Assembly (NCBI GenBank): GCA_002269645.1
Contig: NIVC01000110.1
Span: forward strand, 682,001 to 746,000
Length of the DNA: 64,000 bases
Source: Macrostomum lignano
Taxonomy: Eukaryota
Reading direction: 5' to 3'
This document shows, piece by piece, positions 26,258 through 64,000 of this stretch (positions within the stretch are counted from its first letter, which is position 1; the number at the start of each line of letters is the position of its first letter). The notes under the pieces were generated by a model. That model ran no database searches and was not told the DNA's origin. It was given only the letters and a program-made list of their open reading frames with translations. The position numbers and the translations under genes are program-made.

Positions 26258-26267
26258 ATAGAGACAG

Positions 26268-26301
<34 letters not shown>

Positions 26302-26718: not shown

Positions 26719-27020
26719 AAATAACATTCATTGATATTGAAAACTATTTACACATCAGCCAAAAACAATATCGGGTGTAGCTGCATTCTCTGTTGCGTCT
26801 GCAAAGCTGCCAGAGCATCGAAGAAGGCCTTCATGTGCTGGTGTTTGAGTGTAAAAATTCAGTACATTCTCAGAGGAGTTCTACCGTTAAGCACTCAGTC
26901 AGCTGAGACAGTTTTTGCATTTATGTGCCGCATAAGGGTTTAAAGAGTTGCTCTAATGGAATTTTTTCTACATTTTCGGCATCAATTCCTGTCTCTTGTA
27001 CTTGACGTGAACTCTCAAAG

Positions 27021-29594: not shown

Positions 29595-29910
29595 ATCGTG
29601 AGCAGTGGAGGGTGAACATGACAGAGTAAGAAGTGGAGAGTCGAATGAGATGGGAAAGTGAGTACGGAGAGTGAGTTGAGAAAGGGAGAGTGAGTAGAGG
29701 AGACAGTAGGGGAGAGTGAGAAGGGGAGGGTGAGTAGGGAGAATGAGATGGAGAGAGTGAGTAGGGTGAGTAGGGAGAGTGAGTAGGGAGAGTGAGATGG
29801 AGAGAGTGAGTGGGGATAGTGAGATGGAGAGAGTGAGTAGGGAGAGTGAGATGGAGAGAGTGAGTATGTGAGAGTGAGAAGGGGAGGGTGAGTAGGGAAG
29901 AGTGAGTAGT
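29595..29910. repeat. GA-rich degenerate repeat (GGAGAGTGAGTAG-like)
   Basis: Direct observation. Confidence 0.8.
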
Positions 29911-32516
29911 GTGATTTCGAAGACGCAATTTTTAGTTAGAAAAGAGATTAAGAGATTGCAAGTATGAAGCCGAGAACAGAAGATCAAAGTCATAAATTAT
30001 TGACTACCACTTTTGCTAGGTGTTATAAATAGCTGCCGGAAATCATTACGAGTCACTGAAAGAACAAGCAATGCTGCGAGTACTTTGAAGTGAGCGTATT
30101 GAAGCATTGTAATATTTCGCTCCTCAATAACAAAGACAAGGGATTATGGAAAGACCTGCGGAATGCTGACCTATTATAGACTATATATACTGTCTCTTAC
30201 TTATACGAGCGTACACATAGGTCGATGATAAGCTCTCTTCACTTTCTGCCTTCCCATTTCAATCAGTTATATTATATACCGGTACAAGCTAGTGATTGAC
30301 CGAATTTACGAAGGAGACGTACATGTATTAAGGCCGCCGGAAAAGAATTAGTGGGAGACGGAGAAGGTCGAGCATCAGTCTTCACTCTTCAGCTCCGGCA
30401 AGGATTCGCCAACAGTCATTCTTCGCTACCGAGTCCCGCCAAGGGGAGCTCGCGAAAAGTTCTGAACTCGTAAAGTTCGTCTCGTCCGTCTTTACCATTC
30501 CTTTCTCTGTCTCGCTCTCTCTCTTTTCCGTTCTAACCACCCAACCGCTCACTCTCCCCGACTCATGCTGGACATCATTGGGCGAGGCCGAGGCTTGACT
30601 GAGTATTTGGGAACGCGAGAAGGTCGACTGCATCGACCCCACCAGCCACCATGCACCGACCACTGCACCCTATTCTCTCTCATCCCATATTGCCGCCGTA
30701 ATTGAGCTCAGCAATGTGAGTAGTGTCCCCTTGAGATTTTGTACACAGTCTGGTCTGTGTGATTTAAATGACTTTATCCCGATAATTTATACAACCGGCT
30801 TTATTATGCAGACTTATGGTAACCAATTTATCTCTGAATTATTTTTCGTATTGGCTGAAGCCAATAAAAATGCCGCTTCAGTTGCACTATTCCGCGTTAT
30901 TATGCGTCTGTCTGACCAAGAGGCAGTCTGCGTGGGTTCGCTTTCCATCAGCTGTGATTTCGTTTTTTGATTCCTATTTTATGGTGACCTGCTTTATTTT
31001 TAACGACTCCCACTTTTGTTTTAACAGAGATTAAACATCTGGTTGAGGGGTTCTGTAGCTAAATAAGTACACAATCACCCTTAAATTAAGCTAAAATCAC
31101 TGTTGTCTGAATCAGTTCAGCCGCTCCGCAAGCCCTCCCTCACTTATTTTAATTGCAGTCACCACTTCTACCCCGCCACTGAATTCTCATTGGCTGACGC
31201 TGGGCGTCTGATTTCTTATTACTGTTTACAACCCGGCCCGCCAGACACTCACAACCCCATCCCCAGTAAATGTTAAATCGATAAAAACTTAGAGCCACGC
31301 GAATGAATGACCGTTGCAATCCTTAAGTCTGACTTTAAAATTCTGTCTGAATATCAAGCTCGGGCTTTTATAAAAAACAAACAGATCGAAGTCTTATTTC
31401 GCTTGACAATTTTTTCTTATCAACTCAACAAACAATCAAACCACCATCACCGTTTGTGACAATAGTGAGGTAACTAACAGAAACTTTCTTTGGACTCGGT
31501 TTATTTTCACAACAACAAAAAATAAACAGCACGTCTGAAGACTCTGAACACCAAAACAAATCAACAACTTTCCTTACACAGTAAAACAAAACCTTGAACT
31601 ACTAAAACCAAATAAGATAAACTTTTGTAAATTACTAACACTGAAGTACTACAACCCCAGACTCCCAGAGGTTAACTGATTTAATATCGGAAGATATTGC
31701 TATAGCCCAAAAAAGCTATAGCAATAGAAACAAGCAAATAATAAATAACAATAATAATGATAATAATAATAAAAACTTGAAGCCAAACAAACGTAAGTTG
31801 AGCACAATAATAAACACACAAAGCGACCATATTATAAACGTTTAGCTATTGTTGAACACTGATTGGAACCATATTTTAAAACAACATAATATTATTAATA
31901 TTTATAAGTTAGGCAAGATAAACTGGGAGAGCTTGGGTTTGCAGTCTTGATGTATAAAAATGAGATGTCGACCTGAAATAAGCAGATCTCCAAACTAAAT
32001 TATTTACAGTGACAACAAAATGGGCAGTTATAGTTTTCGAGTTTCTGTTTCAGCAGGCAAGAATTTCCAATACATTTTCCTATCTATCGAGCGCATAATA
32101 AGTAATCTACTATTATTGTATAACAGCTTGAAAATATTAATTTATGATGAATCGACCAGAAATGCACTGTTAAATTCGTCACACAATTATTCTCAATTAA
32201 CAAGTAAATAAATATTGCTTGAGTAGTGGAGGGGAGGGCCAGGAGGATAAAGATTGGATTATTTTGTATTAGTAAACTATCTGGCAAAAATTATTAATAT
32301 CCCTCGAAAATCGCTTTTGTTTAAATTGGAGAAACTTTTAATTGGCGCCAATTTGATTTTACTGATTAATGCAAAGCTATACAAAAACGATTTTCAAGTA
32401 ATTTATTCAGTAGATTTTGTTAAAATTCGTTGATTATCTGACTTCAACAAGGCATGGCACGGGTAGTATTTAAGTTATTTAATTAAAATAGCTAATAATG
32501 CGTTGCTATGCGGAAC

Positions 32517-33756
32517 TTATGCGTGACAACCGCCATAGCCGGAGTCTTTGTTGCACAGCCGGTTCTGGCAGCCGCGGTAGTCGGAGAAAGACGAGGCCGC
32601 CGAGGCGATTCGAGACGTTGACGCGATCGACTCCAGCTCTTCGAGTGAGGCGCAAGAAGACGGCGGTGGAGGCGGTGGCATCGGCTGAGTCTGAGTCGCC
32701 ACCTCTTGAGTGACAGCAGCCTCCTCCCGCTGAAGGAAGGGATGATGCAGCATCTGCTGGAGGCTGGGCCGCTTGGCCGGATCGGCCTGCAGGCAGGCAT
32801 TGATCAGGTCCCGGCACTCTGGGCTGAGCTTCCGCTTGAACAAAGGCGTACAGTCGCAGATCTGGTCGTCCCGTTCGAATGGTACATCGCCGCAGACCAT
32901 ATCGAATAGCAGGATGCCCAGCGACCAGACCTCGGCCTGCTTGCCGTTGTATCGCCGGTGCCGGATCCACTCGGGCGGGCTGTACACCCTCGTGCCATTG
33001 AAGTCCACGTAGTCAGCTTCTCGAAGCAGAGCGCCGGAGCCGAAGTCGATCAGGCGGAGAGTGCCGTCGGCCAGGTTGACGAGCAAATTCTCGTCCTTGA
33101 TGTCACGGTGCAGCACGCCAACTTCGTGGCATTCGGTCAGAGTGTGCAGCAACTGCCGCATCAGGTCCTTGGCCTCGGTTTCATCCAGGTATCGCTTAGT
33201 TGAAATATAGTCGAATAGGTCTTTGCACTTTTGAATCGCTGCATCACTACTAGCCATTCGCGATCGCCTTCGTAATATTCGACCGGCTGAACTATACCGG
33301 ACACGTTGCGACACATGTGCAGCAGGACGATCTCTATTGGGACGAGTTTGTCGCATGGCAACTTGTGCCAGGTCAGCTTGCTCTTCTCCATCACTTTCAC
33401 CACAAATTCGGCGCCATCGCAGCGTCTCGTCGTGTTGTAAACTCGGCCAAAACCGCCCCGGCCGATCTCCATGCCAACCATGTAGCAGCGTCGGAATTCG
33501 TCAATATGGCGCCATTCGGGCGGCTGGTCTGTCAGCAGACACTCCTCTTGCACTTCGCTTTGTTGCTGCTGGCGCTTGGGCACTTCAACTGTTTTTAAAG
33601 TTTGATTTTAAAACAAATGATCAGTGCCACTGAAAGCCAGTCTACTCACTAATATTACGATTTATTACAGTACAGCAAATTGTAAATTGCAAAGCAAAAT
33701 CGAGACTTACAGGAGATCGGCGCGGAGTCCTCGTCCTCGGCAAATAGGCTCGCCAT
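32517..33756 (-). CDS. PIM: PIM-family Ser/Thr kinase, interrupted by a 1-nt frameshift at ~33229-33232
   Basis: Exon 1 33711-33756 (MASLFAEDEDSAPIS), exon 2 32517-33588. IGRGGFGRVY, VVK, VPIEIVLL in one frame. KDLFDYI, HRDIKDEN, LIDFGSG, GTRVYSPPEWI, VWSLGILLFDMVCGDVPF in the -1 frame. Confidence 0.9.
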
Positions 33757-36179: not shown

Positions 36180-39100
36180 ATGCTAGCTGGCCTGGGCAAG
36201 GTTTCAAGGTTTCAGATTTCACATAATAAGCCAATGATCCGTGATTCCTAATTAAAGTTTACTTTTGTCCGATTGGGCTTTGCGCTTAGAAAAGGTGAGC
36301 TGAGCACCATCTCACGATGACGATATTTGGGGCATTACTGCATCGGGTTCCTTTCAAGAGAGAATAATTAGCGGAAAAATTGTAATAACAGTAATTTCCC
36401 CAGACCTCTGAAATAAACCCTGGAACTTTTTTTCTCTATGTTGAAATATCTGCGGACTGCGGACTGCGGCTGTGTTATAGAACTAAGAAAATTAATGCTC
36501 GCTTGAATGATGATTAGCAGTAACACATGAAAGTCGCGAAGTTTTTTATTCGAGTTCTTTGATGCCAAGCCAACCTTTATTCGAGCAAATTTCACCAACT
36601 GAATTTCACCTCAGGTTGTGAGGAAGCTCTTCAACATTGCGTGCAGACAAGGTATCATCACCTGTTAGACAGGAGTGTCACCTGTTAGACAGGAGTGTCA
36701 CCTGTTAGAAAGGAGTGTCACCTGTTTGAGAGGAGTGTCACCTGTTAGACAGGAGTGTCACCTGTTGTTAGACAGAAGTGTCACCTGTTAGACAGGGGTG
36801 TCACCTGTTGTTAGACAGGAGTGTCACCTGTTAGACGGGGGTGTCACTTGTTAGACAGGAGTGTCACCTGTTAGACAGGAGTGTCACCTGTTTGAGAGGA
36901 GTGTCACATGTTAGACAGGAGTGTCACCTGTTAGACAGGAGTGTCACCTGTTTGACAGGAGTGTCACCTGTTAGAAAGGAGTGTCACCTGTTTGAGAGGA
37001 GTGTCACCTGTTAGACAGGAGTGTCACCTGTTGTTAGACAGAAGTGTCACCTGTTAGACAGGGGTGTCACCTGTTGTTAGACAGGAGTGTCACCTGTTAG
37101 ACAGGAGTGTCACCTGTTAGACAGGAGTGTCACCTGTTAGACAGGAGTGTCACCTGTTAGACAGAAGTGTCACCTGTTAGACAGGAGTGTCACCTGTTAG
37201 ACAGGAGTGTCACCTGTTAGACAGGGGTGTCACCTGTTAGACAGGGGTGTCACCAGTTGTATCTTGAATTTTAATGAACTAACGAATTAGTGCAACAACT
37301 ACAATGAAACATGGTTGCCGAACTAATGGTCTTCCTGTGACCTGCCAAATGGAGTTGCAGACAGCGGCGCATCGGTATCACAATGACTCTCACTGACCTT
37401 GAATTCACCATGCAGAATAAAATGCCACCGTTCCGGCATGGTAAATTAGCATAACTTCATAAATTTGCACCTTGACATGCGAACGCGCACAGTTTGCGAT
37501 CGGCTAATGAGAGGTCCGGAATAATGCAGTTCATTCTGCTTGCGAAGTCAGTTTAGTGCACTGCGCCTTGCTGATCTTAGGTGTAACTTTATTGGGCATG
37601 TACTAGGTACTATACGAGTATATGCAGACTATTACTGCAGAATCTTATAGGGCCGAACTTCACAAACGCGAAATTCCATAAGATCGAGCCTAAAATTGAT
37701 CACGAAATTGTGGAACGAAAGTTTAAGTCAAAAAGTAGACGGCGAGAGTAACTCTTCTTCTTAACAGACGTAAATGCGTCGTCATCTAATCTAGACCTAC
37801 TGTACTGTAGGTAAATATTGAATTTGGACAACTTTTTTTATTTTTTTGAAAACAAGTATGATGAAGTTTGACAGGCGTTCTGGACGCTGATTGCCTCCAA
37901 TAGGGCCTCCCCTAAGTGAAAAAATGGCTTCTTTTTCTGGTCATCGTTTATTTCAAAGTTCTTAAGGTACTTTACAAAATTTGTCAAACTATTGGTTTCG
38001 GAAAAGCTCATTTTACTACTCATGTAAGTAGGTTAAAAATTAATGCTATTTTGAAGGCTCATAAAATGCAGTAAATCTGAGGAGGTTCTGTCGACAGGAT
38101 TCTCTGATCATATCTGTGATGTGTTGTGTTATGGAAATGTTCGATTACTGTTTAGACATTGATTTAGACATTTTAGCGTAACGCGATGGATTGTATCACA
38201 ATTTCCTAGATATCTTACACCGTCATACATTCATGCCTACCGTTAGATATTTATGCCTACGTATAAAGCTGGTACTTTATGATGAACCTGATAGGTGTTG
38301 GTGTTACATGTTAGATATCGCTGGTACCTGTTAAATATCCACTTATGAAATATAAACCTTGGACCACAATTGCAGGCCTGCATGTTTTTTGGTCCTTCAG
38401 TAGTATTACAAGCGCAAATATACTTATTTTTTAATTTCAGTTGTCGAATACAGTTTACTAACAAGGGGAGGTAAGAGGTACTTATTATTATTAAATAATT
38501 ATTAAATTATTATTAATTAAATAAATTATTAATAAGAGGTCTTTATTCCTCACAACGTCACCATCTCACTCTATTCCTCACAGAGTCACCATCACTCTCT
38601 ATTCCTCACGAAATCATCATCTCCCTCTCTCTATTCCTCACGAAATCATCATCTCCCTCTCTCTATTCCTCACGAAATCATCATCCCCCTCTCTCTATTC
38701 CTCACGAAATCATCATCTCCCTCTCTCTATTCCTCACGAAATCATCATCTCCCTCTCTCTATTCCTCACGAAATCATCATCTCCCTCTCTCTATTCCTCA
38801 TGAAATCATCATCTCCCTCTCTCTATTCCTCACGAAATCATCATCTCCCTCTCTCTATTCCTCATGAAATCATCATCTCCCTCTCTCTATTCCTCACGAA
38901 ATCATCATCTCCCTCTCTCTATTCCTCACGAAATCATCATCCCCCTCTCTCTATTCCTCACGAAATCATCATCTCCCTCTCTCTATTCCTCACGTCACCA
39001 TCTCACTCTATTCCTCACAAAGTCAGCATCTCCCTCTCTCTATTCCTCACAAAGTCAGCATCTCCCTCTCTCTATTCCTCACGAAATCATCATCTCCCTC

Positions 39101-39530
39101 TCTCTATTCCTCACGAAATCATCATCTCCCTCTCTCTATTCCTCACGAAATCATCATCTCCCTCTCTCTATTCCTCACGAAATTATCATCTCCCTCTCTC
39201 TATTCCTCACGAAATCATTATCTCACACACACTCTCTACTCCTCACGAAATCATCATCTCCCTCTCTCTATTCCTCACGAAATCATCATCTCCCTCTCTC
39301 TATTCCTCACGAAATCATCATCTCCCTCTTTCTATTCCTCACGAAATCATCATCTCCCTCTCTCTATTCCTCACGAAATCATCATCTCCCTCTCTCTATT
39401 CCTCACGAAATCATCATCTCACACACACTCTCGATCCCTTGCTGTCACTTTCCCGCTCACAGGGTCGCAACGTCCTGGGCCCGAATACCTGCTCCACAAC
39501 AGGCTCACAGACCGCACTTCACTGCACTGA
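36180..39530 (+). CDS. Candidate 80-aa five-exon orphan ORF (or 5' exons/uORF of the RhoGEF transcript)
   Basis: Exons 36180-36200, 36258-36294, 36615-36651, 37361-37440, 39463-39530 all have GT-AG boundaries and join in frame: MLAGLGKFTFVRLGFALRKGCEEALQHCVQTRQRRIGITMTLTDLEFTMQNKMPPFRHGSQRPGPEYLLHNRLTDRTSLH*. No family recognised. Confidence 0.35.
36657..37255. repeat. 20-bp minisatellite (ACAGGAGTGTCACCTGTTAG)
   Basis: Starts 5 bp after a putative donor at 36651. Confidence 0.95.
38545..39425. repeat. 32-bp minisatellite (ATTCCTCACGAAATCATCATCTCCCTCTCTCT)
   Basis: Direct observation. Confidence 0.95.
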
Positions 39531-40107
39531 TATTTCGTTGACCAAAGCCAAATAATCTGTTGATAATAAATAAATCTTGAGAAAAAGCACTTGACAGGTT
39601 GCATGGCAGGTATAGATACATGCAGATTACGCCTCCGTAAGCCACAACCTGTAAAAGAGAGATCTGCCAATAAGTAAAAGTTGGCTTGGCCAAACAGGAA
39701 ACTTCAGTGTTTAGAGCAACAGCTATTTAGCATAATTTATTCAGCGCAATGCTAGGACAGCACTCTGCATACACATGCAGCAGCGGGCAGGAATGGGTCA
39801 GAAGCCTTCGCTGACTCATTGCTATAGTTTGCCTTTCTTGCTGACTGCATGTGGCCCGGCATGAAGGCTGTTTCTCTCTGCCAGTTACACAGTTCTTCGG
39901 CAGAATGGAAAAAAGAAGAGAGGCGGAGAGACGAACAAGAAGAAATTTATAAAAAGAAAAAAAAGTTGTTCACCACCGGCTGCCCTCTACGGTCATTTTA
40001 CAGTTGTTTTCTTACAGAGTCCTATTGAATTATCGAAAAAAGAAACATTTACTCAGCTTTCCTAATACTTCAGCACAACACGTGTCATGTAGGTATAGAA
40101 GTAGAAG

Positions 40108-43095
40108 ATGCCATCAGATCAGCGCCACCAGCTGCAGCCGGTTCAGGATGAGTCAGTAGAACTCAACTCCGAGCTGGACAGTGTTATGCAAGAGATTCTG
40201 TTTACAGAACGGTCCTACGTTGCCGATCTGAGTAGTCTAGTGATGGTGAGTCGGCTTGACCTTGAACTGACTAGATTGAACAACCGCTCAGAATGCTTTT
40301 TACTCTATGAATGCCGTACTCTTTGTTTTTCTGCATGTCATTTATGATTCATATATGATAAATAGATCATCAGACCTGCCAGAGTGGGTCAAGATGCCAT
40401 GCCACTGACACAGCATAGTGCGGTAAGATGCCATGCCACTGACACAGCATAGTGCGGTAAGATGCCATGCCACTGACACAGCATAGTGCGGTAAGATGCC
40501 ATGCCACTGACAGCAGCATAGTGCGGTAAGATGCCATGCCACTGACACAGCATAGTGCGGTAAGATGCCATGCCACTGACACAACATAGTGCGATAAGAT
40601 GCCATGCCACTGACACAGCATAGTGCGGTAAGATGCCATGCCACTGACACAGCATAGTGCGGTAAGATGCCATGCCACTGACACAGCATAGTGCGGTAAG
40701 ATGCCATGCCACTGACACAGCATAGTGCGGTAAGATGCCATGCCACTGACACAGCATAGTGCGGTAAGATGCCATGCCACTGACACAGCATAGTGCGGTA
40801 AGATGCCATGCCACTGACACAGCATAGTGCGGTAAGATGCCATGCCACTGACACAACATAGTGTGATAAGATGCCATGCCACTGACACAGCATAGTGCGG
40901 TAAGATGCCATGCCACTGACACAGCATAGTGCGGTAAGATGCCATGCCACTGACACAGCATAGTGCGGTAAGATGCCATGCCACTGACACAGCATAGTGC
41001 GGTAAGATGCCATGCCACTGACACAGCATAGTGTGATAAGATGCCATGCCACTGACACAGCATAGTGCGGTAAGATGCCATGCCACTGACACAGCATAGT
41101 GCGGTAAGATGCCATGCCCACTGGCTGCTAATGACAACTACCCTTCCCCCCGAAACTCAAACCCACAGGCGGATCTCGGACGCGACTGCCCTCTTCGAAA
41201 TCCTTTGCTACGCTTGCAGAAACTGCACACCGGACTTCTGGCTGCGCTGGAGGCGGCTGATGGTCAGTTGGACCCGCTCTGTCAGGCCTTTCTGGACTGC
41301 GACTTTCGAGTTTATGCCGAGTATTGTGCCAGCTTTCCCGGGTAGGTGTATCGAGTATTCGGGTTCTTGATATCCTGAGTCCCCGCAGACGCCCTCAATG
41401 TTAGTCCGGAAGTCCTCATTATTGGTCCCTGACGTCCTGATCATTACTGATGCTTGAAGTCTTTATTTTGGGTCCTTGCTTGCCATCCCTATTTTATGTT
41501 CCTGACATTCCTCTGGAAGCTTCCGACAACTTATTTAGTCTTCCTGAAATTGCTGTCGAATGTCCCTGACATACCTGGACTAACAGCTGTTTAAAAATTG
41601 CAGCGCACTCGAATGGCTCAGGCAAGTTCGGGTCGCATCGGAATCGCCTCGACTGCAACGACGTCAAAACCAGCAGCAGCTGCAGCACCAGGCCTTGTTG
41701 ATGCTGCACCTGCGACTGCCGCTGGAGGCGCACCTGCTGCAGCCTGTGCAGCGCATCGCCCGCTACCCGCTGCTCCTTCGACGTCTGGCGGCCGCAGCCG
41801 ACGGCAATCCGGCTCGTCCGGCAGCCGCTCGAGCAGCAGCCCGCATGACTGAAGCTGCCGCCGAGACTGACCAAAGGCAGCGTCGACAGCAGCAGGCTGA
41901 GCGACTGCTTCGAGCAGCTGTGGCCTCCTCCGACAGCACTGTTGGCTCCTCGTCCCGCTGGCCAGGTCCGCTGCTGCTGGAGAGCGGCTTCTCCGTTCAA
42001 GGACATCGAAACCCTCGCCGAGCACTACTATTCGGCAGAGCCCTTTTGCTGACAAAGTGTAAAAATAATACCGCATCAACTGACCCCGAAAGCGAACTGT
42101 CACTTCGGGCTGTTTTCTGGTTCGACCGACTGGCATTGATGGACTCGCTGCCTAGGGAGCCGCTGGCGTTCCGCCTACTGGCACTCGACAGGCCACCGCC
42201 CGAGGCTGCAGAGGCCACACTGCGGGCTGACACACCGGCTCAGAAGCGGCTCTGGTGTGGCGAGTTGCGGCGACTCATCCTGGAGGCGATCGGGGGAGGC
42301 TGCGCGAGCTTTGACCAGGACGACGAGGCACCAGCAGTAGCCTCAGCAACAACCGACGGAACATGCTCTCGTCGACGCTCCGTCATGCCACGACGCAGCC
42401 GCTCTGATGCCGGCAATCGAAGGCGGCCGGGCCGGCCTTTCGAGCCCTGCCTGGCAGCGTACGCCCAGCGGCTACGAGTTCAGGACGTCGTCACTGAGGC
42501 GGATGTACAGCCTCTGCTGACGGCACTCTGGGGCGTTGGAGTTTGCCTTAACAGTAATGGCAGCGGAAACAGCGGCCGCGGCGGCAGCTTCAAGCGTAGA
42601 GACTCCCTGACGGCTGCGTCCAACTTGGTCGGCTCGCTGCTCCGACGCCGAGGCAGCGGCTGCTCGTCTTTGACTTCGTCGCCAAGGATTCTGCGTCGAC
42701 GAGGGATGGCGGACGACAAAACGGAAAAGAAATCGGCGCCAACAGTAGTTCTGACACCGGCTGCTGAAGATGGCGCTGAAGCAGCATCAGAGACCGTCAA
42801 GCTTCGATCTTCATCACGTCAGACTCCGACGGTGCCAGAAGATCTGGCCGGGCTGATCGACTCGCTGCCCTACGCTGATGCCGACGAACGAGCTCGACTG
42901 TCGACGGCGGCTGCTGCCGCTGCGGCTGCGGCTTCCGCGGACATCAAAGAATGGCGTTCCACGAAGGACTGGTCAGGAGAGAACATTTTCTGGAAGAGGG
43001 CACTGCTTGACCCGCCAGAAATGTCCTCTGCCGCTGCTGCTGGAGCTGCGGCAGCCGCTGAAAGGCAGCCAAGAACCATTCAGACGCAGCTGTGA
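40108..43095 (+). CDS. DH-PH Rho guanine nucleotide exchange factor, PLEKHG1/2/3-like
   Basis: Exons 40108-40245, 41169-41341, 41604-43095. DH motifs VMQEILFTERSYVADL, FRVYAEYC, LPLEAHLLQPVQRIARYPLLLRRL. PH region LLLESGFSVQGHRNPRRALLFGRALLLTK..TLRADTPAQKRLWCGELRRLILE. Confidence 0.85.
40391..41118. repeat. 34-bp minisatellite (AAGATGCCATGCCACTGACACAGCATAGTGCGGT)
   Basis: RhoGEF intron 1. Confidence 0.95.
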
Positions 43096-43519
43096 TTGAG
43101 ATACTAATTATGTAGTGATAAATAGATCTGGCAGTTTTATATTTTACCGATACTCATAATCATATATGCTTATCTCAAATTTACAACTTTTATATTTTAA
43201 AATCCCTTTCTGAGCTGATAATCTTGCCAATTCAGAGGGATTACAACAAGTTATTATTGTCAAATATCAGCACAGCTCGATTCAAAGAGGGCTTCGTATT
43301 ATATTTTCGACCTTTCTTTGAATGCGATTGCAGATTTTAATCCACTTCGTTTTATTGCCGCCGTTTAAAAAATCCGACAAATTATAACGAATACTGTAAC
43401 GACACAAAGCCGGAAAAACGATATTGTTTGCAGCTTATTAATAGAGCTGATAAATGGAAATACTGGAGCAGTACTAAATTAGAATTATAATGGAATTTAA
43501 CTTTCAGTTAAAAATTCAA

Positions 43520-44874
43520 TTAACTCTTCTGTATATTCTGGTTCCGCCGAACAACCTTTACTTCAGGATCTTTTAGCTGCTCAGGTTGCAGTGACTGCTG
43601 GAGCTGCCGCTGCTGCTGTTGTTGTTGTTGATGTTGTTGCTGCTGACTGAGCTCCTGTCTAAACTGCAGCAGGCCCACCGCCAGCTGTTGAAGTCTTCTT
43701 GCTAATTGACAATTTTTCTCGTTTTACTGAAGCTGAAAGTGCCAGAGAATGTTACAAAGGCTGCCTATTCGTGAAACATTGATCGGTGCTTCTTGGACAT
43801 ATCGATGATCGCAGATACACACAGTGGACACATCGATATCACAGATGCACAAAGTGGACACATCGATTATTGCAGATACACACAGAGGACACATGGATTA
43901 TCGCAGATACACACAGTGGACACATGAATTATCGCAGATACACACAGTGGACACATGGATTATCGTAGATACACACAGTGGACACATGAATTATCGCAGA
44001 TACACACAGTGGACACATGGATTATCGTAGATACACACAGTGGACACATGGATTATCACAGATACACACAGTGGACACATGGATTATCGCAGATACACAC
44101 AGTGGACACATCGATTATCGCAGATACACACAGTGGACACATCGATGATCGCAGATACACACAGTGGACACATGGATTATCGCAGATACACACAGTGGAC
44201 ACATGGATTATCACAGATACACACAGTGGACACATCGATTATCGCAGATACACACAGAGGACACATCGATTATCACAGATACACACAGAGGACACATCGA
44301 TTATCGCAGATACACACAGTGGACACATCGATTATCGCAGATACACACAGTGGACACATCGATCATCGCAGATACACACAGTGGACACATCGATCATCGC
44401 AGATACACACAGTGGACACATCGATCATCGCAGATACACACAGTGGACACATCGATTATCGCAGATACACACAGAGGACACATGGATTATCGCAGATACA
44501 CACAGTGGACACATGGATTATCGCAGATACACACAGTGGACACATCGATTATCGCTATCTTAGATGCACACAGAGAGGACACCCTGAAGATTAGAGTGCA
44601 TTACCATGTCAGCCTGAACTTCTCCCAGCTTGTCCATCTTTCTCTCGGCTTTTGTTCCGACCTCCTGTCCAGCTGACTCGTTCGATGTCGGCGTCGGCTG
44701 CTTGCCGGGATTTTTAAGGCCTGTCTGCGCTTGTCGCTTCCGCCGCTGCTGCAGCTGCTTGTCCAGCGACACAACCAGCTGGCCCCATTCCAGCACGTCC
44801 GTTGACGAAGCCTTCTGACCTGGTGCGGAAGCCGCGTTGGGCGTCAGGCTTCGATGCAATTGAGAGGCCGACAT
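43520..44874 (-). CDS. Small Q-rich coiled-coil protein of unknown function (~157 aa)
   Basis: Exons 44583-44874 and 43520-43701 join in phase 1 (..HSNLQ-A-RRLQQLAVGLLQFRQELSQQQ..). GC-rich codon-like sequence; acceptor ttgtttag 6 nt before the ATG; the intron is filled by a 31-bp minisatellite. Confidence 0.55.
43800..44560. repeat. 31-bp minisatellite (ATCGCAGATACACACAGTGGACACATSGATT)
   Basis: Intron of the coiled-coil orphan. Confidence 0.95.
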
Positions 44875-45475
44875 TTCCAACTAAACAAATTCGTTTTAAA
44901 ACGCTACGAACTAGCGCTACACTTAAAACGAGGAAAAATTAAAGAGAGTTTCTGCGCCTGTGCTGCCACGCTGAGGGCCTTTTTAGGTTTCTGAAGAGAG
45001 CCATAAGGGTAGAGAGTAGTATTATTACTGCACTGCAGATATAGAAGAGGGCTATTTGGGTGACACTTTAGCCATGGAGTACTGGAGAGGCAGGCTCTGG
45101 AACGGAATGTTCATGTAAATACAGCTTTTTGTGATTTTCCGCTACAGCAAGAGATGGTCAGAGTAAAGCCGGCCCTACCAGATACAACTGGACCCCGTGG
45201 TCACGACTCCCACCTCCTCAGGATATCGAGATCTTATGATACGAGCGTATTAAGTATTTGAAGGAGTGTGGGCAGCCGGGCGCACCCTCCTTCGACAACA
45301 TCGTCCCACAACCATCGCTGAGGCAATGCTGACCATTCCGCATGACCCCTGAGCACACAAACGCTCACACAGGGTGCACAGCGGCGCCGACTTTCTAAGC
45401 ATCTGGAATGTACGCTCGTGTACACTCTATGCGCCTCGGTGTTGGCCCTCGTGACTGTGAATCTTCAATCGGGGT

Positions 45476-45747
45476 CCGCTCCAGATCCGCTCCAGATCCG
45501 CTCCAGATCCGCTCCAGATCCGCTCCAGATCCGCTCCAGATCCGCTCCAGATCCGCTCCAGATCCGCTCCAGATCCGCTCCATGAGATTCGCTCCAGATC
45601 CGCTCCAGATCCGCTCCAGATCCGCTCCAGATCCGCTCCAGATCCGCTCCATGAGATCCGCTCCAGATCCGCTCCAGATCCGCTCCAGATCCGCTCCATG
45701 AGATCCGCTCCAGATCCGCTCCAGATCCGCTCCAGATCCGCTCCAGA
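45476..45747. repeat. 11-bp minisatellite (CCAGATCCGCT)
   Basis: Direct observation. Confidence 0.95.
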
Positions 45748-46193
45748 CTTCTAGCCTGAGGCGTCCGTGCATCTGTCAGTGCAGGGTGGCGGAGGGGCGG
45801 GGGCGGGGGGCAGATAAGACAGACAGAGTTGCTGCTGCATTGTACAAGTGCGCACGTTGTAAATTCAACATTCCACTCTACACATCAGTGTTCTCGAGAG
45901 CGCGCGCTTTGTGCGTGATAGATCTACATTTATCAGGTTATGCCATCCCGCAAAATAAGCAAGTATTAAATTTCAGTTATTACTGTGCCTTCAGCATTGT
46001 ATAATTGTCGGTATTGTGGGGTGCAGTGAAACAGGTGACCGAACACCTGACCATATTTGGTTTGGACTGTGTCTCAGTGTTTCAATGCAATTGAACTCGT
46101 GTGAAACAGTTATAACAAATATTAATAATGAAACAATTTTTTTCCAACGGGAAACTTTTATAGTCCGTAGGCCCACCAGGCGGTGAGGCGAAA

Positions 46194-49254: not shown

Positions 49255-49489
49255 GGTTTATTGGATATTTGCAGATTGTTGTTCTCGGGGCTAGGCTTAG
49301 GCGTAGGAGCAGATTGCTTATTATCCTGCCATGAGTGTATTCATTTATTTTAGCACAAGCACGCCAGTGTCTATGGTTGTGATTGGAAGCTGAACTTGGT
49401 CAGTAATAGCGAGTATGCATACTGTTTGGATATGTCACTGAACTACTGCAAGCAGGTGCTAGAGGAAGGGAAACGAATGGAGAGAGGTC

Positions 49490-50368
49490 GTGCTAAAGGA
49501 GGAAGGGAGTGAAGTGAGGTGGGTGCTGGAGGAGGAAGGGAGTGGAGCGAGGTGGGTGCTGGAGGAGTAAAGAAGTGGAGTGAGGTGGGTGCTGGAGGAG
49601 GAAGGGAGTGGAGTGAGGTGGGTGCTGGAGGAGGAAGGGAGTGGAGCGAGGTGGGTGCTGGAGGAGGAAGGGAGTGGAGCGAGGTGGGTGCTGGAGAAGG
49701 AAGGGAGTGGAGTGAGGTGGGTGCTGGAGGAGGAAGGGAGTGGAGCGAGGTGGGTGCTGGAGGAGGAAGGGAGTGGAGCGAGGTGGGTGCTGGAGGAGGA
49801 AGGGAGTGGAGCGAGGTGGGTGCTGGAGGAGGAAGGGAGTGGAGTGAGGTGGGTGCTGGAGGAGGAAGGGAGTGGAGTAAGGTGGGTGCTGGAGGAGGAA
49901 GGGAGTGGAGTGAGGTGGGTGCTGGAGGAGGAAGGGAGTGGAGCGAGGTGGGTGCTGGAGGAGGAAGGGAGTGGAGCGAGGTGGGTGCTGGAGGAGGAAG
50001 GGAGTGGAGCGAGGTGGGTGCTGGAGGAGGAAGGGAGTGGAGCGAGGTGGGTGCTGGAGGAGGAAGGGAGTGGAGCGAGGTGGGTGCTGGAGGAGGAAGG
50101 GAGTGGAGCGAGGTGGGTGCTGGAGAAGGAAGGGAGTGGAGTGAGGTGGGTGCTGGAGGAGGAAGGGAGTGGAGCGAGGTGGGTGCTGGAGGAGGAAGGG
50201 AGTGGAGCGAGGTGGGTGCTGGAGGAGGAAGGGAGTGGAGCGAGGTGGGTGCTGGAGGAGGAAGGGAGTGGAGCGAGGTGGGTGCTGGAGGAGGAAGGGA
50301 GTGGAGTGAGGTGGGTGCTGGAAGAGGAAGGGAGTGGAGCGAGGTGGGTGCTGGAGGAGGAAGGAGTG
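49490..50368. repeat. 33-bp G-rich minisatellite (GAGGTGGGTGCTGGAGGAGGAAGGGAGTGGAGC)
   Basis: Spacer between amt and the TRC8_N-like gene. Confidence 0.96.
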
Positions 50369-50789
50369 AATCATGAGGTGGGTGCAGGGGGTTAGAAAAT
50401 TGATTGATTGCAACATTTTAATCCAGTTTTGGTGACCAGCTCTACTGGAACAGTTGCACAGACATCCATGGAATTGGTTGAAAATAAGCTAAAAAAATAA
50501 TTGAAAAATTTTTTTTTCGCTTTCCCTCTCTAAGGTCTGCTAATCCTTGAGAAGATTATTTAACTCAACAAATCTATTTCTTATGACTATTGGAAATAAA
50601 TCGCAGTTAGATGTGGGGAAACAAATCTAAGCTTCCTTTGAGATGGATATGGATACGCCGACAATAAAAGTCACTTTTTCACACGAATTTCGCTACTATT
50701 ATTTAATACGTAAATAAAGATTGAAGTCTGCACCATACTACTGATTCAGTAGAGAAAGCAGCTAATATCAATTCTCATTAGCAACATCG

Positions 50790-57772
<6,983 letters not shown>

Positions 57773-57829: not shown

Positions 57830-58070
57830 TGAGCGAGGTGGTCGCCTAGATTTGGTCAGGCATTCAGAGTGCAGGGAAAGGAAAAAATCGGAGTGAGGTG
57901 GTCGCCTAGATTTGGTCAGCCAATCAGAGTGCATGGCAGGGAAGAAATCAGAGTGAGGTGGTTGCCTAGATTAAGTCAGCCAATTAGAGTGTAGGGAAGG
58001 GAAGAAGTCGGAGTGAGGTTGCTTAGATAAGATCAGCCAACCAGAGTGCAGGGAAGGGAAGAAAGTGGAG
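57830..58070. repeat. 60-bp CCAATCAG-containing repeat upstream of amt
   Basis: 4 diverged units, period 60. Confidence 0.85.
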
Positions 58071-58661
58071 TGGAGACGAATAAAATTTTATTGTCTATAA
58101 ATAACTCATTAACTACGAGCATAAAATCCAAGAAGAGAGGGTTTATTGAGGTGCGTTCTGAAGGTTATATTTCTGTTTGGGCTTTTGTCGAAAACTCGAA
58201 AGATTGGTTGCTAATTAGACAAAAGCACTGATAAACCTTTGTGAACTCACGTGTGTAACTTTTTCAAGCTGTACGTACTTTAACTGAAAATATTGTGAGC
58301 TATTGCCACTCGAGTTGATTTTTTTTAGATTTCTCAAATTTGCTTCCTATCCAATTGCTAATCAGTAAGAAGATACTTTTATAAATGTTCATATGTGAAT
58401 ACCTGCATGATAAACTCAGTGCTCTGGGCAATTCAAACTTAGTGCATACGGTTCGGCTCAAAGTAATTATCAGAGACAACGAACCAGTCGCATACTCCAG
58501 TTCATCTCATTGGTTGCTTGAACTGCGTGTGCAATACGAACTGCTTTTAGCCGCCTCGGGGCTGAACTAAACAAATTATCATCAGAGTTGCAAGCTACTT
58601 GTCGTTGTATAATATGGACATTGCAGGTCCTGCAACAATCACAGTTTGACTTTTCAGTCGA

Positions 58662-59603: not shown

Positions 59604-60422
59604 ACAGGGAGAGGACAGGGAGTGAAGGACAGGGAGAGAAGGACAGGGAGAGAAGGACAGGGAGAGAAGGACAGGGAGAAAAGGACAGGGAGAGAAGGAC
59701 AGGGAGAGAAGGACAGGGAGAGAGGGACAGGGAGAGAAGGACAGGGAGAGAAGGACAGGGAGAGAAGGACAGGGAGAAAAGGACAGGGAGAGAAGGACAG
59801 GGAGAGAAGGACAGGGAGAGAAAGACAGGGAGAGAAGGACAGGGAGAGAAGGACAGGGAGAGAAGGACAGGGAGAGAAGGACAGGGAGAGAAGGACAGGG
59901 AGAGAAGGACAGGGAGAGAAGGACAGGGAGAGAAGGACACAGATGGAAGGACAGGGAGAGAAGGACAGGGAGAGAAGGACAGGGAGAGAAGGACAGGGAG
60001 AGAAGGACAGGGAGAGAAGGACAGGGAGAGAAGGACAGGGAGAGAAGGACAGGGAGAGAAGGACAGGGAGAGAAGGACAGGGAGAGAAGGACAGGGAGAA
60101 AAGGACAGGGAGAAAAGGACAGGGAGAGAAGGACAGGGAGAGAAGGACAGGGAGAGAAGGACAGGGAGAGAAGGACAGGGAGAGAAGGACAGGGAGAAAA
60201 GGACAGGGAGAGAAGGACAGGGAGAGAAGGACAGGGAGAGAAGGACAGGGAGAGAAGGACAGGGAGAGAAGGACAGGGAGAGAAGGACAGGGAGAGAAGG
60301 ACAGGGTGTGAAGGACAGGGAGAGAAGGACAGGGTATGAAGGACAGGGAGAGAAGGACAGGGTGTGAAGAACAAGGAGAGAAGGACAGGGAGAGAAGGAC
60401 AGGGTGTGAAGAACAAGGAGAG
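59604..60422. repeat. 14-bp purine-rich minisatellite (GGACAGGGAGAGAA)
   Basis: Direct observation. Confidence 0.96.
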
Positions 60423-60751
60423 AAAGACCATAGGTCTGTACAACCAGAGCTGTAGGCGATGAGAATGTAGATGTGGAGGCAAAAGAACTCAAGCGAGTCT
60501 CCAACTGTGCGGGATGGCAGGTTGCTAAATTTAGACACAATATACAATATGCCTCGTACAATAGATGGCAAGGCGGCCGTCAGCTCTCTCCTTACCTCCA
60601 TCCGCTCCACAATAAATCTCGTCCCCATTCCCCTTGCCCCCAATCAGTTGTTATAGCAACCAGCCAGTACAGGTAGCTATAGAAGCCCCAACCGCTGCAA
60701 ATTGTATAAATAATTCTCAGAGGCAATAATTGCCTGTGTTTGACCCATCAG

Positions 60752-61003
60752 ACAGAGACAGAGATGCACCACAGCCAGCAGCAGGATGCTCAGCAGCAGC
60801 CTCCGGCTCGCTCTGCCTACCAGGGCGACTTTGGCGCCTCTACGCACAGCCCGGCCGAGCGAGTTCGAGCCGTGAGGCCAGTCGATCAGCTGATCAGCCT
60901 GGGCGGCGAAGAGGCGACTGGAAAGTTCTTCGCCAAGGCTGGCGGCGGTGGCGGCGAGGCGGCGACGAGGAGGCAGCCGATTCGACCTGCTGGGGAGATC
61001 CAG
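60752..61003 (+). CDS. Probable coding exon of a gene continuing past the window; weak resemblance to the segment preceding the RIM/UNC-10 C2B domain
   Basis: GC-rich open exon between acceptor cccatcag and donor CAG|GTGTGC: MHHSQQQDAQQQPP..KFFAKAGGGGG..RRQPIRPAGEIQ (cf. F..F..G..RQ..P..G(D/E)IQ). A second frame is also open. Confidence 0.35.
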
Positions 61004-61156
61004 GTGTGCGGCTCAGGCTGGGGCAGAGGCATTTTGAGGAATCGGGAAGGCAGTATGATGGATGGGGAGCGGTGGAGAGAGGGGGAGAGGGTGTGAGGGT
61101 GTGAGATGGAGAGGGTGTGAGCAGGAGAGGGTATGAGGGAGAGAGGGTGTTAGGGG

Positions 61157-61476
61157 TGTAGAGAAAACTAACGATTGAATTATGAGATATTTAATTGGAG
61201 TTAAATTGAATCTAAGATAAGCCAGTAAGTGGGCGCAGGGCCCAAACAAGTATATTTATACCAGACATTAACTTAGGGGGTTTAAATTGCAGATAATAAA
61301 GAGAGGGGGTGGAGTGCGCGACTGAGGAAAGAGGCGAGAACGGAGAGCCAATCAGAACGCAGCAAGGGAGAGAGAGAGATAAGAATAACAAGATTGAGCT
61401 GGACAGAGAAGAGAGAAAACAGAGTAAACAGAGACAAGTGAAGGTGAACTAAGAAATGACTAGGAAAGTCGCGACA
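61157..61476 (-). repeat. LTR copy 1 (3' terminal LTR of the array)
   Basis: Ends ..CTCTACA against unrelated GA-rich host sequence; no PBS follows. Confidence 0.85.
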
Positions 61477-62357
61477 CTCCCCCCAAAAAATGAAACATTT
61501 TTTGAATTTTCGAGTACCAATAGAATTATGAATTAGAGTTCAAGAAACAAATTTAAAACAAATTTAACAATGGTGTACGAGCTACAAATACGACTAAGAA
61601 TTTCAATACAAAAACTGTGGAGACTAGAGTGAATGCAAATATTTAGACCGAATTTTAAACTTAGATTTTTATTGAGTAGTTTTTGAACCATAGCAATGAG
61701 AAGACTGAAAAGACTGAATATATCCGCCCTCCCCCCTAAAAATTAATTTAATTTTTTACATTGTGACTACATGGTGAAAGAAAAAATTGAATGACGAATT
61801 AACGAGGCGATCTGGCAGGCGATGAGCGAAGAGACGATCCGGCAGGCGATGAGCGAAGAGACGATCCGGCAGGCGATGAGCAAAGAGACGATCCGGCAGG
61901 CGATGAGCAAAGAGACGATCCGGCAGGCGAGCGAAGAGATGATCCGGCAGGCGAGCGAAGAGACGATCCGGCAGGCGAGCCCCGCGGCGCCCCGGCAGAG
62001 AATTTGAACCGAGAGAGACCGAGGACACCGCAGGACGCACCCCCGGCAGACGATGAGCGAAGAGACGATCCGGCAGGCGAGCCCTGAGGTGCCCCGGCCG
62101 AGAATTTGAGACCGAGAGAGACCGAGGACACCGCAGGACGCACCCCCGGCAGACGAAGCGATGAGGCCGACAGACGAAGCGATGAGGCCGACAGACGAAG
62201 CGATGAGGCCGACAGACGAAGCGATGAGGCCGACAAACGAAGCGATGAGGCCGACAGACGGGATGACGAGATGACTGGTGGAGGGTTACGACTATGACGA
62301 TGGCATGGCCTTTGCCAGCCTTACTGAATTGACTTAATTATTTTTCATTGGGCGCCA

Positions 62358-62677
62358 TGTAGAAAAAATACTAAACTAAAGACTAGAGAGTTACTTGGAG
62401 TTAAATTGAATCTAAGATAAGCCAGTAAGTGGGCGCAGGGCCCAAACAAGTATATTTATACCAGACATTAACTTAGGGGGTTTAAATTGCAGATAATAAA
62501 GAGAGGGGGTGGAGTGCGCGACTGAGGAAAGAGGCGAGAACGGAGAGCCAATCAGAACGCAGCAAGGGAGAGAGAGAGATAAGAATAACAAGATTGAGCT
62601 GGACAGAGAAGAGAGAAAACAGAGTAAACAGAGACAAGTGAAGGTGAACTAAAGAAATGACTAGGAAAGTCGCGACA
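62358..62677 (-). repeat. LTR copy 2 (variant U5 end)
   Basis: Near-identical to copies 1 and 3 except the terminal ~35 bp. Confidence 0.85.
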
Positions 62678-63642
62678 CTCCCCCAAAAAAATGGAACATT
62701 TTTTGAATTTTCGAGTACCATTACCAATTGAAATTAATGAGTTAGAATTAGGTCGAATTAAATTGAAAAACACATTCACAATAAATGGTGTATAAAACGA
62801 TTTGAAAAATACATAATGACTAAGAATTTGAATACAAAAACAGTAGAGCGAATGCAAAATATTTAGACCGAATTTTAAACTTAGATTTTTATTGAGTAGT
62901 TTTTGAACCAATGAGAAGACTGAAAAGACTGAATATATCCGCCCTCCCCCTAAAAATTAATTTAATTTTTTAAATTGTGACTACATGGTGAAAGAAAAAA
63001 TTGAATGACGAATTAACGAGGCGATCTGGCAGGCGATGAGCGAAGAGACGATCCGGCAGGCGATGAGCGAAGAGACGATCCGGCAGGCGATGAGCAAAGA
63101 GACGATCCGGCAGGCGATGAGCAAAGAGACGATCCGGCAGGCGAGCCCCGAGGCGCCCCGGCCGAGAATTTGAACCGAGAGAGACCGAGGACACCGCAGG
63201 ACGCACCCCCGGCAGACGACGAGCGAAGAGACGATCCGGAAGGCGAGCGAAGAGATGATCCGGCAGGCGAGCGAAGAGACGATCCGGCAGGCGAGCCCCG
63301 CGGCGCCCCGGCAGAGAATCTGAACCGAGAGAGACCGAGGACACCGCAGGACGCACCCCCGGCAGACGATGAGCGAAGAGACGATCCGGCAGGCGAGCCC
63401 TGAGGTGCCCCGGCCGAGAATTTGAGACCGAGAGAGACCGAGGACACCGCAGGACGCACCCCCGGCAGACGAAGCGATGAGGCCGACAGACGAAGCGATG
63501 AGGCCGACAGACGAAGCGATGAGGCCGACAAACGAAGCGATGAGGCCGACAGACGAAGCGATGAGAAGACTGGTGGAGGGCTACGACTATGACGATGGCA
63601 TGGCCTTTGCCAGCCTTACTGAATTGACTTAATTATTTTACA

Positions 63643-63652
63643 TTGGGCGCCA
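63643..63652 (-). promoter_or_regulatory. Primer-binding site, tRNA-Lys(CTT) type (second copy 62348-62357)
   Basis: TGGCGCCCAA directly after LTR ..ACA; matches the first 10 nt of the Lys1,2 PBS TGGCGCCCAACG.. Confidence 0.8.
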
Positions 63653-63973
63653 TGTAGAGAAAACTAACGATTGAATTATGAGATATTTAATTGGAGTTAA
63701 ATTGAATCTAAGATAAGCCAGTAAGTGGGCGCAGGGCCCAAACAAGTATATTTATACCAGACATTAACTTAGGGGGTTTAAATTGCAGATAATAAAGAGA
63801 GGGGGTGGAGTGCGCGACTGAGGAAAGAGGCGAGAACGGAGAGCCAATCAGAACGCAGCAAGGGAGAGAGAGAGATAAGAATAACAAGATTGAGCTGGAC
63901 AGAGAAGAGAGAAAACAGAGTAAACAGAGACAAGTGAAGGTGAACTAAAGAAATGACTAGGAAAGTCGCGACA
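63653..63973 (-). repeat. LTR copy 3 (U3 CCAAT/TATA, ATTAAA poly(A) signal)
   Basis: Minus strand TGTCGCGAC...CTGATTGG...GGTATAAATA...ATTAAA...CTCTACA. Confidence 0.85.
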
Positions 63974-64000
63974 CTCCCCCCAAAAAAATGGAACATTTTT

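Follow-up and report, generated by a model that had tools for sequence, protein, structure and literature searches.

By the classical definition (Witte et al. 2001, quoted in PMC6934838 and 10.1101/010850), a TRIM is <1,000 bp in total and has terminal repeats of 100-250 bp; in a survey of plants, however, 22% of TRIM subfamilies were found to be >1 kb and 32% to have LTRs >250 bp (10.1101/010850). Plant TA-TRIMs, among them Cassandra and the maize elements Wukong and SMART, are non-coding units of LTR, PBS, internal region and PPT that lie in arrays such as L3I2 and L5I4, with each LTR inside the array shared by adjacent copies (Gao et al., 10.1101/010850, PMC4528315). Most are <1 kb with LTRs of ~200 bp, their PBS usually corresponds to tRNA-Met, and their proposed origin is inter-element recombination. 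In animals, biv-TRIM of bivalves forms TDRx_I(x-1) arrays of up to 58 repeats, and also occurs as monomers and solo repeats, but has no recognisable canonical PBS (PMC6934838). The other flatworm TRIM family, ta-TRIM, is restricted to Taeniidae; it is non-coding and LTR-promoted, carries an 8-nt tRNA-Leu PBS, and has a few tandem copies that were ascribed to unequal crossing-over (PMC4558846). Both its expression and its dispersal are documented, and a candidate partner was recognised by common LTR ends, PBS and TSD length (PMC4558846). Highly polymorphic tandems of alternating shared LTRs and internal regions, mostly of full-length coding gypsy/copia elements, have been described in rice and other plants, Drosophila and kangaroo centromeres; the candidate origins are illegitimate recombination between LTRs and insertion of tandem transcripts that run past a weak terminator (PMC11899658).

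We analysed a window of 64 kb from Macrostomum lignano, by which we mean the whole stretch of DNA under study (64,000 nt). Two NCBI M. lignano contigs match this window, with 99.76% and about 97% identity. On contig NIVC01000561.1, the homeologous or allelic counterpart of the array would be expected near 428-432 kb, provided that the two sequences are collinear.

The minus strand of the window contains an array in the order LTR3-INT2-LTR2-INT1-LTR1, preceded by the end of another internal region, as determined from the sequence, a repeat finder, blastn and alignment. It has at least three LTRs, and both INT2 and INT1 are complete. This is the L(n)I(n-1) layout; taken singly, the two monomers would be 1,521 and 1,616 bp long with 320-bp LTRs (blastn). 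We conclude, with a probability of roughly 0.8, that the array is a non-autonomous, protein-less, TRIM-like LTR retrotransposon whose copies stand head to tail, neighbours sharing an LTR. The anatomy thus bears out the original prediction of a non-coding LTR retroelement arranged as a shared-LTR tandem. Selfish DNA of this kind is ordinary, with precedents in plants, bivalves and tapeworms; we found no published description of a shared-LTR non-coding element in M. lignano.

The three LTRs are direct repeats of 320-321 bp bounded by TGT...ACA, in agreement with the ~320-bp minus-strand LTRs that had been proposed: LTR3 at 63973-63653 (321 bp), the shared middle LTR2 at 62677-62358 (320 bp), both delimited by sequence, blastn and alignment, and the terminal 3' LTR1 at 61476-61157 (320 bp; blastn, alignment). 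An autonomous partner would be expected to have LTRs that begin with TGTCGCGAC and end with TCTACA, after which TGGCGCCCAA follows. Outside the U5 end of LTR2, the LTRs are 99.7-100% identical (blastn, alignment). A single 1-nt indel is the whole difference between LTR1 and LTR3, and LTR2 equals LTR3 across its first 283 nt (alignment). The final ~35 nt of LTR2 (62394-62358) are strongly diverged, with 14 substitutions over 31 aligned nucleotides. A TATA box, TATAAATA, begins at LTR position 218 (63756-63749 in LTR3, 62460-62453 in LTR2 and 61260-61253 in LTR1). The LTRs had further been expected to contain CCAAT and ATTAAA, with all cis-signals intact. ATTAAA is present in LTR3 (63691-63686) and LTR1 (61195-61190), but LTR2 has lost it and carries AAGTAAC instead, so that "intact" is wrong for LTR2. 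The CCAAT box at promoter position is inverted: it reads CTGATTGG at LTR positions 123-130, ~90 bp upstream of TATAAATA (in LTR3, CCAATCAG on the plus strand at 63844-63851). The sole sense-strand CCAAT (LTR position 280) is found downstream of the TATA box, where it overlaps ATTAAA. We also compared the LTR with the many minisatellites of the window that bear CCAATCAG, and reject a kinship between them: they have the motif in common and show no blastn similarity.

Small-RNA modules and stress-response elements have been described in other LTRs. Unlike Cassandra, whose LTR has a 5S module, the M. lignano LTR has no 5S rRNA-, tRNA- or snRNA-like module, of the kind that marks Cassandra, Helenus or Ajax, detectable by Rfam at gathering score over the whole window or at E<=1 over 61000-64000; a tRNA scan of the window was also empty. 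Likewise, the canonical three-unit heat-shock element (nGAAnnTTCnnGAAn or its inverse) is absent from the whole array, in contrast to the heat-responsive LTR-retrotransposon families of M. lignano (PMC12801592).

A putative PBS, TGGCGCCCAATG, lies directly 3' of LTR3 (63652-63641) and of LTR2 (62357-62346), with zero spacer in both cases, as had been anticipated. The 10-mer TGGCGCCCAA has no other occurrence on either strand of the 64 kb (exact motif scan), and its chance of occurring at one fixed site is ~6e-7. In line with the proposal of a tRNA-Lys-type primer site, the array PBS agrees at 10 of 11 nt with the PBS TGGCGCCCAAC of Drosophila Gypsy (mdg4), which lies immediately 3' of the 5' LTR, is primed by tRNA-Lys,2, and has been defined experimentally as functional (PMC1635307). 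The M. lignano element has TGGCGCCCAAT at the corresponding place. Gypsy itself is autonomous, 7.5 kb long, and carries gag, pol and env; the priming signal alone is comparable, with no homology implied. Complementarity of the array PBS to the tRNA-Lys,2 consensus ends after 10 nt. From the PBS, the tRNA primer is predicted to end in ...TTGGGCGCCA, and ideally in ...CATTGGGCGCCA. Neither the window nor five further M. lignano loci (~96 kb) yielded a tRNA gene. This tRNA-Lys-like site sets the array apart from plant TA-TRIMs and ta-TRIM, with their tRNA-Met and tRNA-Leu sites, respectively, and a textbook PBS and PPT distinguish it from biv-TRIM, with which it is compared by structure.

Each LTR is adjoined at its 5' end by the sequence T(6-7)GGGGG(G)AG, so that the T-run and polypurine tract claimed for each LTR are present at 3 of 3, although the tract is short, at just 7-8 nt. 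The sequence takes the form T7-GGGGGAG before LTR2 (62691-62678) and T6-GGGGGGAG before LTR1 (61490-61477), and within the window GGGGGAGTGT is confined to the three LTR-adjacent sites. We reject a conserved fold for the leader or for packaging: the segment that begins in the 3' part of the LTR, spans the PBS and reaches into the leader is no more stably folded than shuffled sequences (z = -0.8).

The internal regions are non-coding and consist largely of minisatellites (tandem-repeat search). INT2 (63652-62678, 975 bp) starts with the PBS and a leader of ~75 nt. Its minisatellites follow, with units of 21 bp (63565-63462), 102/150 bp (63472-63053) and 27 bp (63144-63018), and then an AT-rich 3' part with a PPT-like motif near 62960. 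INT1 (62357-61477, 881 bp) has the same layout; its 21-bp units outnumber those of INT2 by one, and its 102-bp units are fewer by one. Strong divergence marks a block at 61630-61520 in INT1 and 62849-62721 in INT2. No internal ORF of INT1 or INT2 has a Pfam match, no protein homologue was found for either region, and a protein search with a 172-aa internal ORF returned no matches. Exact look-ups of the ORFs within the LTR and the internal region likewise gave no recorded protein. The expectation of internal regions of 0.9-1.0 kb without gag or pol is therefore upheld, and the array shares with TRIMs the lack of Gag and Pol coding capacity; in this it differs from the mostly coding tandems of PMC11899658. 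In size, however, the monomers (1,521 and 1,616 bp) and their 320-bp LTRs exceed those of the classical TRIM, and the element is also larger than ta-TRIM and most plant TA-TRIMs. Hence the element is TRIM-like at most: of the proposed label, the non-coding part stands, the classical limits of size are surpassed, and the looser definition fits.

The array has one precise boundary inside the window. The similarity between LTR1 and the other units breaks off exactly at ACA, the end that is defined independently by the PBS junctions, as would be expected at an integration boundary and not with an arbitrary tandem duplication. The adjoining host sequence, CCCCTA (TAGGGG on the plus strand; 61156-61151), is a candidate half of a TSD, and opens a CT-rich 8/16-bp minisatellite (61155-61074). 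At the other end, the 27 nt before LTR3 (64000-63974) are the 3' terminus of one more internal region and include a T-run and GGGGGGAG (63981-63974). Compared with the corresponding ends of INT1 and INT2, they differ in homopolymer lengths and at one SNP, the one informative position, where they agree with INT2. The array therefore runs on beyond the window, as the original prediction had it.

The same prediction placed the array in an intron of a plus-strand gene, for which we found no support: the plus-strand ORF adjoining the array has neither a protein homologue nor a Pfam match, and the sole gene model that touches the flank, UniProt A0A1I8I9W1 (AMT), is on the minus strand. An exon-like stretch at 60985-60809, outside the element, 170 bp downstream of LTR1 and in the element's orientation, is used by this model (100% identity over 59 aa; tblastn) and is preceded by a pyrimidine tract and CAG. 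LTR1 lies 3.4 kb upstream of the ammonium-transporter gene, is co-oriented with it, and could conceivably feed transcripts into that gene.

We infer a life cycle for the element from the canonical cycle of LTR retrotransposons. RNA would start ~25-30 nt past TATAAATA in a 5' LTR and would be polyadenylated after ATTAAA in a 3' LTR. The Gag and Pol for its packaging would be supplied in trans by an autonomous element, most likely of Ty3/mdg4 type. A tRNA-Lys annealed to TGGCGCCCAA would prime the minus strand, the GGGGG(G)AG tract would prime the plus strand, and the TGT...ACA ends would be joined to the target by integrase. LTR retrotransposons make up 21% of the M. lignano genome, so trans-acting machinery is available.

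The two units of the array are 99% identical except in two sharply bounded blocks that are roughly 30-45% diverged. Substitutions affect 29 of 103 aligned positions in the first block and 14 of 31 in the second, as against 9 of 1025 elsewhere. Such a mosaic means that the array has taken in sequence from one or more diverged relatives in the family, and it argues for exchange with other members of the family, as far as can be judged from the units themselves; the route may have been inter-element recombination, gene conversion or template switching during reverse transcription. As for the array as a whole, unequal homologous recombination between LTRs is its most likely origin, in line with what has been proposed for plant TA-TRIMs and ta-TRIM. 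A simple crossover between two elements predicts that the U5 variant of LTR2 is also present in LTR1. LTR1 does not carry it, and the history therefore needs at least one further event.

We considered an origin by retrotransposition, in which the multimer itself transposes as one unit: a transcript begun in one LTR would read through LTR2, which has lost its poly(A) signal, and end in the next LTR, and the dimeric RNA would be reverse-transcribed and inserted as LTR-INT-LTR*-INT-LTR. We regard this as unlikely, despite several features that fit it. LTR2 alone lacks ATTAAA and has its divergence restricted to the R/U5 end, as an internal LTR would be free to differ, and the outer LTRs are nearly identical, with one indel, as reverse transcription of one RNA predicts. 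For plant tandems, both tandem insertion and weak terminators have already been put forward, and TA-TRIMs that were mobilised and have differing TSDs have been reported from maize. However, the internal-region end that precedes LTR3 indicates that LTR3 is not the 5' end, so that a simple dimer insertion misfits unless there are further units or later events; moreover, an internal R and PBS would promote deletion at strand transfer. If this reading were true, the array would be direct animal evidence that shared-LTR tandems can be born and spread by reverse transcription instead of chromosomal recombination.

It is also improbable that the array is the tail of a larger recombinant, such that the sequence past 64000 is the 3' end of a full-length autonomous parent sharing the PPT-proximal region and the LTR. 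Just 27 nt are visible upstream of LTR3, and these belong to the PPT-proximal part that derivatives usually share with their parent; inter-element recombination is, in addition, the commonly proposed source of such arrays. Nevertheless, the match to INT2 at the informative SNP fits another miniature unit equally well.

No further copies of the family were found elsewhere in the window (blastn), and there were no matches to the LTR, the internal regions or the PBS in the five other M. lignano loci (L001-L005, ~96 kb), which are PIM-kinase paralogue loci and a sample far too small to indicate absence. Exact-pattern scans of JGI metagenome contigs gave no match either, as expected for a flatworm repeat. 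The dearth of copies in the window and these loci, the extraordinary proneness of the surrounding genome to tandem repeats (15% of the genome) and the expanding minisatellites within the internal regions themselves would suit a locus-bound macrosatellite, that is, an old insertion amplified in place by slippage or unequal exchange, with relic cis-signals and no living dispersed family; but this is very improbable, since amplification in place plus drift cannot yield 99% identity over ~1,000 nt beside two blocks diverged by 30-45%, a pattern for which a diverged donor copy is needed, and since LTRs that are almost free of mutations point to a structure that is young or under homogenisation.

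The TRIM-like retrotransposon described here, which in contrast to ta-TRIM is known from the sequence of one locus, bears on how such elements are catalogued. Mining of LTR retrotransposons in M. lignano began from reverse transcriptase (PMC12801592), and unclassified LTRharvest hits were discarded (PMC5730564); consequently, protein-less families are invisible in the current catalogues of this species, a transgenesis-ready model of regeneration. Beyond this gap, a handle on the partner and a test of origin, the array is a matter of routine repeat annotation. Its textbook PBS, PPT and promoter motifs would make such a well-preserved TRIM-like element convenient for identifying the autonomous partner. 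The plant literature is explicitly undecided on the origin of shared-LTR tandems (PMC11899658), and the array would allow this to be tested in an animal.

Read on the minus strand, the final 2.8 kb of the window is a head-to-tail array in which neighbouring units share a long terminal repeat (LTR). It opens with the last 27 nt of a further internal region (64000-63974), closing with T7-GGGGGGAG, and continues with LTR3 (63973-63653, 321 bp), the internal region INT2 (62678-63652, 975 bp), LTR2 (62677-62358, 320 bp), the internal region INT1 (62357-61477, 881 bp) and LTR1 (61476-61157, 320 bp). After LTR1 comes a CT-rich flank (CCCCTAACACCC..., minus strand) unrelated to the array. A repeat finder, blastn and MAFFT agree on the three LTRs, each running from TGT to ACA. 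A single 1-nt indel separates LTR1 from LTR3, and LTR2 is identical to LTR3 over 283 nt and divergent beyond. We found TGGCGCCCAATG directly 3' of LTR3 and LTR2, with a spacer of zero; the 10-mer TGGCGCCCAA, for which the chance of occurrence at one fixed site is ~6e-7, has no further occurrence on either strand of the 64 kb. A T-run and GGGGG(G)AG adjoin the first base of all three LTRs, and GGGGGAGTGT is restricted to these three sites in the window. The LTRs, the abutting primer-binding site (PBS) motif and the polypurine tracts (PPTs), including that ahead of LTR3, are thus as described in the original prediction. Homology of LTR1 to the other copies ends exactly after ACA, the same ACA that is set independently by the two PBS junctions; hence, the boundary is as predicted for integrase. 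Together, the LTR copies, the placement of PBS and PPT, and this coincidence confirm the array well beyond chance. We conclude that it is a real, well-preserved feature.

Each internal region consists of the PBS and a unique leader of ~75 nt, minisatellite blocks of 21-bp, 102/150-bp and 27-bp, and an AT-rich 3' part, within which lies a PPT-like motif, followed by the PPT. The PPT-like motif, AATTTTTAGGGGG(G)AGGGCGG (~62950-62970 and ~61735-61755, minus strand), sits ~270 nt 5' of the PPT proper and could be a central-PPT analogue or a relic of an older LTR boundary. As anticipated, gag and pol are absent: the internal ORFs (119-172 aa) are translated repeats without any Pfam family, and the 172-aa ORF has no homologue among 5.8 billion proteins. 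We detected no Rfam match at gathering score across the window, none at E<=1 in 61000-64000, and no tRNA with ARAGORN, indicating that the LTR lacks a 5S, tRNA or snRNA module, in contrast to those of Cassandra, Helenus and Ajax. The stretch from the LTR 3' part through the PBS to the leader folds no better than shuffled controls.

The element is TRIM-like in its working and resembles the tandemly arrayed TRIMs of plants (TA-TRIMs) in its arrangement, L(n)I(n-1). It has the terminal repeats, TG/CA ends and PPT of an LTR retrotransposon, and a putative PBS motif in the correct place. Its description as a miniature, non-coding TRIM holds for coding capacity and layout, but not for size in the strict sense: at 1.52-1.62 kb with 320-bp LTRs it lies outside strict TRIM limits, and fits the upper size tail still called TRIMs in a plant survey (10.1101/010850). 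Shared-LTR TRIM arrays are known in bivalves (PMC6934838) and taeniid flatworms (PMC4558846), and tandem LTR retrotransposons in Drosophila and kangaroos (PMC11899658). In the searchable literature, we came across no TRIM-like family described for Macrostomum; mining of M. lignano LTR retrotransposons has been centred on reverse transcriptase (PMC12801592) or has discarded unclassified elements (PMC5730564), with a passing mention of a '2-kb long LTR retrotransposon' (PMC5730564).

CCAAT, TATA-type and ATTAAA motifs do exist in the LTRs, but details differ from the first description. The single sense-strand CCAAT (LTR position 280) is 3' of the TATA box and overlaps ATTAAA; the box that occupies the promoter position reads in the inverted orientation (CTGATTGG, LTR positions 123-130), ~90 nt 5' of TATAAATA at LTR position 218. 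LTR3 and LTR1 carry ATTAAA (LTR position 283), in place of which LTR2 has AAGTAAC. A motif scan of the array detected no canonical heat-shock element, distinguishing it from heat-induced M. lignano families (PMC12801592). The window has 15 plus-strand and two minus-strand occurrences of the NF-Y-type motif CCAATCAG (23640-24061, 25549-25752, 57831-58072 and 60640; in the LTRs at 61348, 62548 and 63844), mostly one in each unit of minisatellites that have a 59-65-bp period and also bear GGGTGGG runs; these minisatellites and the LTRs have the motif in common and nothing else alignable.

By reference to the established LTR-retrotransposon cycle, the LTR promoter would drive an RNA ending at the LTR poly(A) signal, with a likely R of ~50-65 nt and a very short U5. 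Proteins of an autonomous partner would package this RNA, tRNA-Lys would prime at the PBS, the PPT would prime the plus strand, and the TGT/ACA ends would mediate integration. In Drosophila Gypsy, an 11-nt PBS, TGGCGCCCAAC, immediately 3' of the LTR is experimentally required for cDNA synthesis (PMC1635307), making its 10-nt version at the equivalent place in M. lignano plausible as a primer site. The abundant Ty3/mdg4 (Mag, Gmr1/Osvaldo, CsRN1), Bel/Pao and Copia families of M. lignano (PMC12801592) could be the trans-acting partners.

Genes in the window encode a kinesin, a C2-domain protein, a beta-lactamase-like protein, a PIM kinase (one exon matching a Macrostomum lignano protein at 100% identity), a RhoGEF and an ammonium transporter (AMT). 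The AMT start codon is at 57772, and the array lies 3.4 kb upstream, co-oriented. Placement of the array within an intron of a plus-strand gene was not supported: the plus-strand ORF beside it has no homologue or domain, and only one gene model reaches the flank, UniProt A0A1I8I9W1, which includes 60985-60809 of the minus strand. This model, a 928-aa 'Ammonium_transp domain-containing protein', is visibly chimeric. Its pieces (60809-60985, 57302-57619, 45285-45751 and 41575-43104, all minus strand) correspond to an exon-like stretch by the array, a portion of AMT exon 1, an 11-bp minisatellite in translation and a RhoGEF exon in antisense; its first 101 residues match nothing in the window. 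Over 50 minisatellite arrays crowd the spaces between the genes. Long, well conserved and of extraordinary density, with periods of 11-69 bp and up to about 90 copies, they occupy both introns and the DNA between genes in a region that is otherwise ordinary and gene-dense (for example, 18-1108, 1696-3060, 16290-17430, 38595-39420, 40383-41123, 49455-50385, 55000-57193 and 59612-60428), and many generate spurious ORFs, several hundred codons long, in multiple frames. Interstitial, degenerate telomere-like repeats (GGTTAGG / TTAGGG variants; units of 39, 60, 79 and 127 bp) lie at 27134-27676, and 12000-16000 is 4 kb of AT-rich sequence (GC 0.29 vs 0.40-0.55 elsewhere in the window) without long ORFs. 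Positions 24759-33501 match NIVC01000560.1:1-8746 at 99.76% identity, and 38540-44373 match NIVC01000561.1, at the start of the comparison locus L001, at ~97%. The window is identical to neither of these Mlig_3_7 contigs, one of which terminates inside the PIM-kinase gene, and was therefore assigned to a different assembly or haplotype of this region. This pattern fits the redundancy and hidden polyploidy already known for the assembly, the M. lignano genome being partly duplicated (PMC5730564), and would offer a homeologous counterpart of the insertion site.

We aligned INT2+LTR2 to INT1+LTR1. Apart from two blocks, the units differ by 9 substitutions over 1025 aligned positions and by minisatellite copy number. 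The first block (62849-62721 vs 61630-61520), about 50-190 nt 5' of the PPT, shows 29 substitutions over 103 aligned positions and 34 gap columns; the second, the final 32 nt of the LTR (62394-62364 vs 61194-61163), has 14 in 31. Such a mosaic calls for import from a diverged relative, whether through recombination between elements, through gene conversion or through a template switch at the reverse-transcription stage, and is indirect evidence suggesting that further family members exist. The array as a whole would be explained most simply by unequal homologous recombination between LTRs, as invoked for plant TA-TRIMs (10.1101/010850), the bivalve biv-TRIM (PMC6934838) and the taeniid ta-TRIM tandems (PMC4558846). 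Since the U5 of LTR1 is of the LTR3 type, not the LTR2 type, a plain two-element crossover is insufficient and at least one extra event is needed. A route through a reverse-transcribed read-through dimer RNA, which we rank below recombination and consider improbable, predicts identical outer LTRs and a terminator-less middle LTR differing in R/U5, as we observed, but is at odds with the internal-region end that lies 5' of LTR3; both routes are kept open in the plant literature (PMC11899658). In-place duplication followed by drift is incompatible with two diverged blocks amid near-identity, and a homology stop exactly at the ACA of LTR1 is not what tandem duplication of an arbitrary segment would lead one to expect. 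The terminator-less LTR2 could raise the value of this array as a test case for the birth of shared-LTR tandems.
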